NCBI GenBank assembly: GCA_002189035.1
Contig: NEEC01000025.1
Location: 372,001-436,000, forward strand
DNA length: 64,000 nucleotides
Reading direction: 5' to 3'
DNA from: Utricularia gibba
Lineage: Eukaryota; Plantae; Magnoliophyta
This document shows positions 30,329 to 31,648 of this stretch, piece after piece. The translations under genes were made by a program, and so were the position numbers. Position 1 is the first letter of the stretch; each line of letters begins with the position of its first letter. The notes below the pieces were generated by a model. The model saw nothing but the letters and a program-made list of their open reading frames with translations, had not been told where the DNA came from and made no database searches.

Positions 30329-30835
30329 TCATGGTGATGCAAAGGTGAATCATCCCCTGGTAGTTGAGCGAAGAAGACGATGATTTATCAACCCACAGGC
30401 ATCTGGGAGGTCTACTTGATCTCTGAAACTAACACTCTTGTTTCATCTTTTTTTTTTTTTTACTTGTTAGATTTGTTAGCATTCACCGGTGACTTGAAAG
30501 GGTTTCTACCTTTTATTTATGCTGTGGATTTCATTTACCCTTTTCGTAGCTTTAGTTGCGTGATTGTGACAGCTGCTGCTGGCTGTTATTTCCAAGAAAG
30601 GGATTGCTACAAAATTAATCGACAAATATTTTTAAATATTAAGCCAATTAGTAAATGATGAGATGGAGACACGTGTTAGGTCGTGAGGATGAGGGCCAAT
30701 AAGGAGGCGCCAGGTGTCCGTGTTAGCAGACGTTCATTTGATCCGGCGGTGTATATGGGCCCGGGTCATATTTGAAGCCCAAGAATTATAAAGCCTGGCA
30801 GGCCCACGTTTCCGGGTTTTGTAACCGCCAACTCC

Positions 30836-31311
30836 GTGGTGGCTTTCTCTGCGGGTGTATCGCATTTGTCCCTCTTGAATGCAGTCGGAAACTTCAGGAA
30901 CCGGTTTTCCTTTCCGGCGGAAACTTGCGCACTCGAGAACTCGCTTGGTTTACGGAAGGGTCTATGCCTTGATCGGCCGTTCTGCATTTCCGTGGCATCC
31001 AGATTCACTGGGATCAAGAAACGAGTTCGGTCGATCGCATGTAATGCCTACGATGCCAAAGGAGCGGAGTCGGCATCATCGGTAGGTCGGAAAGTGAAAA
31101 TTGGCGTCTATTTTGCGATCTTGTGGACTGTGAATGCTGCACGGAATATGTACATCAATAAATCCTTTCATTTCCCCTGGCTCCTTTCCACGCTTTCATC
31201 TGGTAGTCATTCCATACCTTTGGTGCATTTCATTCCGATGTTTATATTGTCTCTCATACGAGAATTTGACTTACAATTGGTTGTCTTTTGGCCAGGTGGG
31301 TCGTTGCACAG
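30836..31311 (+). pseudogene. Internally deleted, diverged copy of the GPT transporter gene (exon 1 part, end of exon 3, intron 3, first 16 nt of exon 4)
   Basis: Translation VVAFSAG...LNAVGNF...FPAETCALE...LDRPFCIS...GIKKRV.SIACNAYDA...KVKIGVYFA..W...FPWL.STLS aligns to GPT exon 1 (55426-54939, -). Intron 31203-31295 ends TGTCTTTTGGCCAG|GTGGGTCGTTGCACAG, the same as the GPT intron 3/exon 4 junction. ATG is replaced by GTG. Confidence 0.88.
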
Positions 31312-31648
31312 CCGAGATAATCTCTAGATACGAGAGATGGATCGAGCATTTCGGCAATGTGTACAAAAACGAAGCTGAGACGAGATGTTCAAAATCTTTA
31401 AGCGCAATGCTAAGTTTATCGACACTTCCAATGCTGCGATGATCTTCAGATACGAGAGATGGATGGAGCGATCCGGAGGTGTGTACAAGAACGAAGCTGA
31501 AAAGGCCAAGAGGTTCGAAATTTTCAAGCGCAATATTGAGTTCATCGACTCTAACAACGCGGCCGGAGAGAATGAGTTCAGAGATCTCACCAACGAGGAG
31601 CCTTGTGGTAGGAATGGGTTAAAGCCGCGTCCAAGTACTGCTGCCTAG
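31311..31648 (+). other. Duplicated cysteine-protease prodomain (I29) fragment containing an 87-aa ATG ORF at 31385-31648; no mature protease domain
   Basis: Two units 122 bp apart (GATAATCTCTAGATACGAGAGATGG at 31316; GATGATCTTCAGATACGAGAGATGG at 31438). ORF has [20 protein letters not shown] and GENEFRDLTNEE. Confidence 0.8.

Follow-up and report, generated by a model that had tools for sequence, protein, structure and literature searches.

A mosaic of GPT-transporter and cysteine-protease propeptide sequence in the Utricularia gibba genome, probably an old and decaying pseudogene

Genes and features of the locus

The window analysed here, a stretch of 64,000 nt of Utricularia gibba, is plant nuclear DNA with a very high gene density, and the U. 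gibba genome is known for its very short intergenic DNA. The gene map was drawn from stop-to-stop ORFs and Pfam matches, and the GPT and protease genes were searched exon by exon. The mosaic lies between a trihelix/Myb-SANT gene and a RING-variant gene, and relatives of both of its parts are present in the same window.

10942..27507: array of six papain-type protease genes: CP1-4 (minus strand, 10.9-20.4 kb) and CP5-6 (plus strand, 23.7-27.5 kb) (ORFs, Pfam)
28896-29798, plus: trihelix/Myb-SANT gene (ORFs, Pfam)
30644..30810, plus: promoter-like block (read from the sequence)
30836..31202, plus: GPT exon 1-derived segment, transit peptide and start of the TPT domain; its last 9 nt, TTTCATCTG, are the end of exon 3 (self-BLAST, alignment)
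31203..31295, plus: retained GPT intron 3, 93 nt, GT..AG, with two small insertions that the parent does not have (alignment to 54188-54108)
31296..31311, plus: first 16 nt of GPT exon 4 (alignment)
31311..31437, plus: I29 propeptide unit 1, AEIISRYERW...FIDTSNAA (alignment)
31433..31645, plus: I29 propeptide unit 2, AAMIFRYERW...DLTNEE plus 16 residues (Pfam, alignment)
31385..31648, plus: ORF of 87 codons, spanning the later half of unit 1 and the whole of unit 2 (ORF list, Pfam)
from about 32473, plus: RING-variant gene (ORFs, Pfam)
53795..55426, minus: intact GPT (TPT family) paralogue, exons 1-4 read (sequence reading, Pfam)

The exon ORFs of the GPT parent cover positions 2-76, 71-146, 148-212 and 221-291 of the TPT profile (E 6e-21 to 1.5e-31). 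Tandem arrays of trap-expressed cysteine proteases have been described in U. gibba (bioRxiv 10.1101/2025.04.05.646448, citing Lan et al. 2017), and the six-protease array of the window fits that description.

Make-up of the mosaic and its breakpoints

Positions 30837-31203 are a copy of GPT exon 1, which in the parent occupies 55425-55031 of the minus strand (277 of 398 positions identical including gaps, 69.6%, E 1e-44; self-BLAST and pairwise alignment), as had been proposed in a preliminary description of the locus, where an inverted, diverged copy of a GPT gene about 24 kb away was recognised. A second block, 31194-31311, aligns with GPT 54197-54092 (88 of 118 identical, E 5e-17, same methods); it runs from the final 9 nt of exon 3 through the whole of intron 3 and 16 nt into exon 4. 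TTTCATCTGG is common to both blocks. The jump from exon 1 to the end of exon 3 over a near-identical microhomology, also proposed earlier, matches base for base: the mosaic reads CCACGCTTTCATCTGGTAGTC, the parent exon 1 CCACGCTTTCTCTGG and the end of the parent exon 3 TTTCATCTG|GTAACC. The shared TTTC lies at 31194-31197 (TTTC-TCTGG in parent exon 1 against TTTCATCTG|G in parent exon 3), and about 840 bp of GPT were skipped at this point. Beyond the jump, intron 3 is kept with its GT..AG borders (31203-31295) and is followed by the 16 nt of exon 4 (31296-31311), again as first described. The about 840 bp absent from the copy comprise what remains of exon 1, the whole of exon 2 and the bulk of exon 3; exon 4 is missing past its first 16 nt, and no further relics of GPT exons 2-4 were found around the locus.

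The remaining part, 31311-31645, matches the I29 propeptide sequence of all six array proteases (best E 6e-29, with CP4; self-BLAST). After GTGGGTCGTTGCACAG the mosaic continues with GCCGAGATAATC..., which aligns with the propeptide start in six of six protease genes and bears out the proposed switch into protease prodomain sequence; microhomology at this switch is 1-2 nt at most. Within the propeptide part, the joint between units 1 and 2 carries an ACGCCGC-like microhomology of about 7 nt, coding NAA and DAA, and an 18-nt deletion in unit 2 is associated with a CGG microhomology. Mapping of the breakpoints against GPT and CP1-6, one of the checks suggested in the preliminary description, places the junctions at 31194-31197, 31311 and 31433-31437. 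The mosaic itself is confirmed in every detail checked. New relative to that description are the tandem I29 units, the seventh protease lineage, the limit of the GPT homology at the start codon, the near-neutral evolution of the GPT part and the degraded state of the I29 domain.

The GPT-derived part

In the GPT copy GTG at 30836 replaces the ATG, and the ORF list contains no in-frame ATG upstream. The frame is open over 121 GPT codons, in agreement with the stop-free run of about 122 codons and the GTG start reported before, and over 163 codons in all, to the TAG at 31325-31327 that follows ...GGSLHSRDNL; this is the stop given earlier in support of the statement that no in-frame fusion results. 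As the intron is 93 nt long, the GPT-derived frame ends at the same stop whether spliced or unspliced, and the propeptide frame is reached neither by it nor by the native frame of exon 4. A link between the GPT and propeptide frames through sequencing errors is unlikely, since the GPT-derived frame is already open and a 1-nt overcount or two undercounts would be needed.

Homology with the parent sets in with base 2 of the start codon, which is ATG in the parent and GTG in the copy. Upstream of it none was detected between copy and parent over 400 nt: local alignment scored 14 (null 12 +/- 1.5), and global alignment did less well than with shuffled sequence. Inside the exon 1 segment two in-frame deletions, of 21 and 9 nt, are present. 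Over 119 codon pairs, copy and parent share 68 of 119 residues, and their differences are distributed over the three codon positions as 23/36/37, so that third-position bias is absent. The dN/dS ratio, whose estimation had also been suggested, is 0.64 (NG86) to 0.81 (YN00), with dS about 0.4-0.46 and dN about 0.30-0.32. For this estimate an N served to bridge the frameshift in the G run of the parent; in the simulation of stop gain a placeholder base did so. Such dN/dS values suggest near-neutral evolution of the GPT part, whose first 34 TPT-domain codons have accumulated 12 replacements and a 3-codon deletion. The ORF 30836-31324 matches no Pfam family, including TPT (PF03151), at E 0.01, compared with E 6e-21 for the equivalent region of the parent. 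The copy therefore has neither the TPT profile match nor the ATG with a full set of exons in one frame that characterise a gene of the TPT family. The open frame itself is not evidence of constraint, because a stop-free run of about 130 codons survives 12-27% random substitution in 5-22% of neutral simulations.

The propeptide part

The propeptide part contains an internal tandem duplication (31316-31437 against 31438-31563, 76%; the units are 76-78% alike overall), which is newly recognised and was absent from the preliminary description. At the joint, the unit end AAYGCYGC (NAA) resembles the unit start GAYGCSGM (DAA or DAE). The frame of unit 1 is disrupted by a 4-nt deletion, and a change of AGG to ATG in its ERFNIN arginine produces the ATG at 31385. 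Unit 2 has lost 18 nt, i.e. six codons (LSYKLG in the array genes), before GxNxFxD, and both ERFNIN and GxNxFxD are still legible in it. In Pfam searches with I29 (PF08246; cut-off 24.4 bits), the ORF 31385-31645 scores 43.9 bits and unit 2 alone 38.7 bits; the six intact array genes score 66.1-68.3 bits, about 25 above the 87-residue ORF. Of the two domains of a C1A protease, I29 is present and Peptidase_C1 is missing: no relic of it and no catalytic domain was found in the ORFs of the locus (Pfam) or within 29.8-33.5 kb (tblastn with the array proteins). The protease homology begins downstream of the signal peptide of the array proteases, which is thus outside the mosaic, and stops near 31645.

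In the tree, units 1 and 2 are sisters (88% support), their attachment to CP4 is weak (65%) and their branches are about as long as those leading to the array genes. Unit 2 is separated from CP1-6 by dS of 0.7-2.4 and dN of 0.17-0.27, and the CP genes from one another, over the same codons, by dS of 0.73-2.5 and dN of 0.12-0.24. Since its divergence and branch lengths match those between CP genes, the propeptide piece does not derive from a recent copy of any present array member, and the two units are the relic of a seventh lineage of the array. The kinship of the prodomain with the array 4 kb upstream, claimed earlier, therefore holds, but its derivation from a recent copy does not, as dS and the tree point to a lineage equally old. 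Selection on the units was assessed from their differences: 14 codons differ in amino acid, compared with 17.4 +/- 1.9 expected neutrally when the observed transition bias is included (P 0.066), and the third-position share is 12 of 27 (P 0.15). An uncorrected Nei-Gojobori count gives a Fisher P of 0.011 by a method that ignores the 2:1 excess of transitions. In neither measure do the substitutions between the units differ significantly from drift. Replacement and silent counts unique to the terminal branch of unit 2 are too small to be informative, and the ratios of the intact genes are similar.

Within the locus, the 87-codon ORF alone could still yield a folded product. It starts with MFKIFKRNAKFIDTSNAA and shows by eye no hydrophobic core, hence no signal peptide; the array proteases carry one. 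Stand-alone I29 propeptide-like inhibitors are known from animals: CTLA-2 of the mouse, BCPI of the silkworm and crammer of Drosophila. Like these, the ORF consists in essence of I29 and has no protease domain, and a promoter-driven transcript might yield an 87-residue, signal-less, propeptide-only inhibitor or decoy of papain-type proteases, rebuilt from the dying seventh member of the array; if this were true, it would be a plant counterpart of the animal inhibitors, caught at birth. We regard this as very improbable. Unlike the animal proteins, the ORF shows no clear sign of selection, lacks a signal peptide and is without relatives of similarly short build in the protein collection searched, it carries the six-residue deletion, and its start codon arose by a point change within a decaying duplicate. 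The segment before GxNxFxD is a strand of the I29 fold, as known from procathepsin structures, and the ORF, with six codons (LSYKLG) deleted, does not hold the full set of I29 fold elements of a stand-alone inhibitor. A word search of the protein collection returned no protein of 48-152 aa resembling it; its exact sequence was absent from this collection, which also lacked the exact sequence of the neighbouring trihelix protein.

The upstream block and possible transcription

TATAAA is present at 30787-30792 and TGGGCY (site II) at 30756, 30776 and 30801, so the TATA and site II motifs reported upstream of the mosaic can be read directly in the sequence; CCAAT occurs at 30644-30648 and 30696-30700, and a G-box, CACGTG, at 30670-30675. 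The block shares no homology with the region upstream of the intact GPT gene (no better than shuffles). It is possible that the mosaic keeps the ancestral GPT promoter and that the upstream region of the intact gene was replaced. As this cluster of motifs resembles promoters of the window, the mosaic may be transcribed, alone or as a long leader of the RING-variant gene, just 5' of whose ATG a possible splice acceptor, gtgcag|GT, is located.

Across the window, TGGGCY clusters (site II, TCP-type) stand at most intergenic promoter positions (28053-28539, 36722-36746, 40031-40073, 43828-43903, 53393-53450 and 56057-56114), and the motif has 64 matches against 49 +/- 7 in shuffles.

A role of such a transcript as regulatory RNA against both parent families, one of the possibilities raised earlier, has little in its favour, as the exact matches are too short. 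The longest exact match to the GPT parent, and the only exact parent match of at least 21 nt, is a stretch of 30 nt (31282-31311) made up of 14 intron and 16 exon nt, and the longest with a protease mRNA is 20 nt. Consequently, no exact match of at least 21 nt to a mature parent mRNA exists, and at an identity to the parents of only 70-82% the mosaic would be a poor source of trans-acting small RNA. In U. gibba, DCL3 is reported to be truncated and 24-nt siRNAs to be few (PMC8333044). An Rfam search over 28-36 kb returned no family at the mosaic and only an unrelated tRNA at 34.6 kb. The bacterial-type promoter and terminator scan has no bearing on a plant locus.

Origin and fate of the mosaic

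The locus is probably a non-coding mosaic pseudogene, old and decaying, rather than a new working gene. Of the readings offered in the preliminary description, that of debris is favoured by the missing ATG, the absence of a frame joining GPT and propeptide, the dN/dS of 0.64-0.81 and the loss of the TPT match in the GPT part, and the degraded I29 domain. The suggested origin by local shuffling is reasonable for the GPT part, but the protease part is no recent copy from the array.

The order of events and the repair mechanism, like the lack of function, are what we infer from these features. A seventh protease gene would once have stood on the plus strand beyond CP5 and CP6, and a partial inverted duplicate of GPT would have come to lie 5' of it, with the loss of about 840 bp. 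Of the protease gene only the I29 region would have survived, partly duplicated in tandem and severed from its signal peptide and catalytic domain. Two routes may have led to this state. Successive microhomology-mediated deletions and one duplication of 126 nt might have collapsed the GPT duplicate and the protease gene; or a single break in the protease gene might have been repaired by error-prone, template-switching synthesis, in which GPT exon 1 was copied, then the end of exon 3, then the propeptide, followed by a slip back of 126 nt and onward synthesis. In either case the whole mosaic would have drifted near neutrally afterwards. Both routes fit equally well and are indistinguishable, since neutral decay alone could account for the indels, of which there are about nine over some 800 bp, given a substitution level of roughly 15% on the own branch. 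As all novel junctions have short or no microhomology, they point to illegitimate recombination, end joining or template switching during break repair, and not to transposition.

The raw difference is about 22% for intron 3 (outside the exact 30-nt stretch) and 22% between units 1 and 2, which would fit a GPT duplication and a propeptide duplication of about one age, the pieces being short and the confidence limits wide. Among four indels in sequence of coding origin, three have lengths divisible by three (-21, -9, -18). Together with the open GPT frame they are mildly unusual for pure drift (roughly P 0.01-0.1), and some coding constraint on one or both genes may have outlasted the duplication for a time. 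Counting against the proposed history is the start of the GPT homology exactly at the start codon, which is explained by neither route.

Similar structures have been documented. The mechanisms of both routes are well established as origins of gene fragments in plants, and gene fragments introduced as filler in break repair and fragment capture are documented as giving rise to plant pseudogenes (PMC3445842, citing Wicker et al. 2010, PMC2928501). The filler mosaics of double-strand-break repair by synthesis-dependent strand annealing resemble the present locus in their short, intron-bearing pieces of unrelated genes, the little or no microhomology, the lack of transposon ends and the non-coding product. 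They differ in that the present locus has both relatives no more than 25 kb away, one of its pieces is seemingly an array relic in its place and not an imported patch, and the event is old, so that the repair route is not directly readable. The decay of tandem arrays, such as the U. gibba trap protease arrays, is another parallel: the propeptide relic follows CP5 and CP6 on the plus strand and has diverged as much as any member of the array, but an unrelated trihelix gene (28896-29798) stands between relic and array, and the relic is fused to a transporter piece.

Among the other explanations, a locus that is still alive is rather unlikely. Its site II/TATA promoter would drive a transcript that acts as non-coding RNA, as a long 5' leader or first intron of the RING-variant gene or, through the 87-residue propeptide-only ORF, as a protease inhibitor. 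In favour of a live locus are the resemblance of the upstream cluster to real promoters of the window, the intact splice signals of intron 3, the possible acceptor gtgcag|GT just before the RING-variant ATG, and the ORF 31385-31645, which exceeds the Pfam I29 threshold (43.9 against 24.4 bits) with ERFNIN and GxNxFxD legible. Yet a product of this ORF, lacking the signal peptide that the array proteases have, would be in a different compartment from its targets; six residues before GxNxFxD are deleted and the I29 score is about 25 bits under that of all six intact genes; the unit 1/unit 2 substitutions since the duplication show no departure from neutrality; and the protein collection searched contained no similar short protein. 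For a live RNA role, the identity to the parents of 70-82% with no exact match of at least 21 nt to a mature parent mRNA is unfavourable, as is the reported weakening of the 24-nt siRNA pathway in U. gibba (PMC8333044).

An origin as cargo of a fragment-capturing transposon (Pack-MULE, Helitron or CACTA) that inserted at this site is improbable. Mosaics of intron-bearing fragments from several genes in the same orientation are typical of such elements (literature reviewed in PMC3445842); the locus shares with Pack-MULE and Helitron cargoes the fragments of two genes in one orientation, the retained intron and the possible chimeric transcript, and donors for both the GPT and the protease part are nearby. 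It differs from them in having no terminal inverted repeats, target-site duplications, 3' hairpin with CTRR or other copies in the window. The search for Pack-MULE and Helitron ends, suggested in the preliminary description, detected no flanking inverted repeats above chance (best 19-27 nt with 70-74% complementarity), no target-site duplications of 9-10 bp and, on either side, no Helitron 3' end when CTRR-T preceded by a perfect stem of 6-9 bp was looked for, a scan that would miss decayed ends. The flanks of the mosaic are single-copy within the window and match no LTR-like repeat, the window contains no long direct repeats apart from the protease genes, and the propeptide part is as old as the array and not a copy of any of its present members. 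Short ends could have been erased by a decay of about 15%. A joining of GPT-gene and protease-gene reads during assembly is hardly credible. There are likely homopolymer errors in the window (1-nt deficits in G runs of the GPT parent and CP3), but each segment of the mosaic is 18-30% diverged from any source that the window could offer, whereas mis-joined reads would be near-identical, and all its junctions lie within less than 900 bp, less than the length of single long reads. Misassembly thus appears unlikely, judged by the divergence of 18-30%.

As the probable non-coding pseudogene, the mosaic is a chimera of a well-known kind, of local interest for the history of the protease array. An array linked to bladderwort carnivory gains a seventh, dead lineage, and the locus offers a dated, breakpoint-level example of the shuffling of gene pieces followed by decay. 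It can also mislead annotators: a frame of 163 codons is open, the splice signals are intact, the I29 hit is above threshold and the block upstream looks like a promoter, but there is no indication of a working gene.

Neighbouring genes and assembly

In the assembled sequence, exon 1 of the GPT parent contains a frameshift at a run of five G (55199-55203). The frame of the transit peptide ends at TGA 55183-55181, and it is in another frame that the TPT domain goes on; the copy at 30.8 kb has a single frame there. The frameshift is probably a homopolymer error of the assembly; otherwise the parent would be a very recent pseudogene. CP3, which starts with ATGGCGTCTAGG... near 17555, loses its frame in the signal peptide at a run of four G (about 17503-17506, minus strand), and its I29 and Peptidase_C1 frame is open after the run. 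This second 1-nt deficit in a G run supports homopolymer errors of the assembly, and it seems that single-base frame calls in it need care.

CP2 and CP3 (14121-15182 and 16555-17535) encode I29 and the whole of Peptidase_C1 in one uninterrupted ORF, while CP1, CP4, CP5 and CP6 contain an intron about 24 residues into the C1 domain. The intron has thus been lost from these two neighbouring genes of the array.

A 116-nt tandem repeat of two copies, 92% identical, occupies 30059-30286, directly 3' of the trihelix gene and about 550 nt upstream of the mosaic. A tRNA gene (34611-34682, plus strand; Rfam 66 bits) is located between the RING-variant gene and a heat-shock-factor-like gene. A dispersed direct repeat of 149 nt, 75% identical, is found at 3031-3178 and 12835-12982, the latter copy between CP1 and CP2, and may be a remnant of a small transposon.
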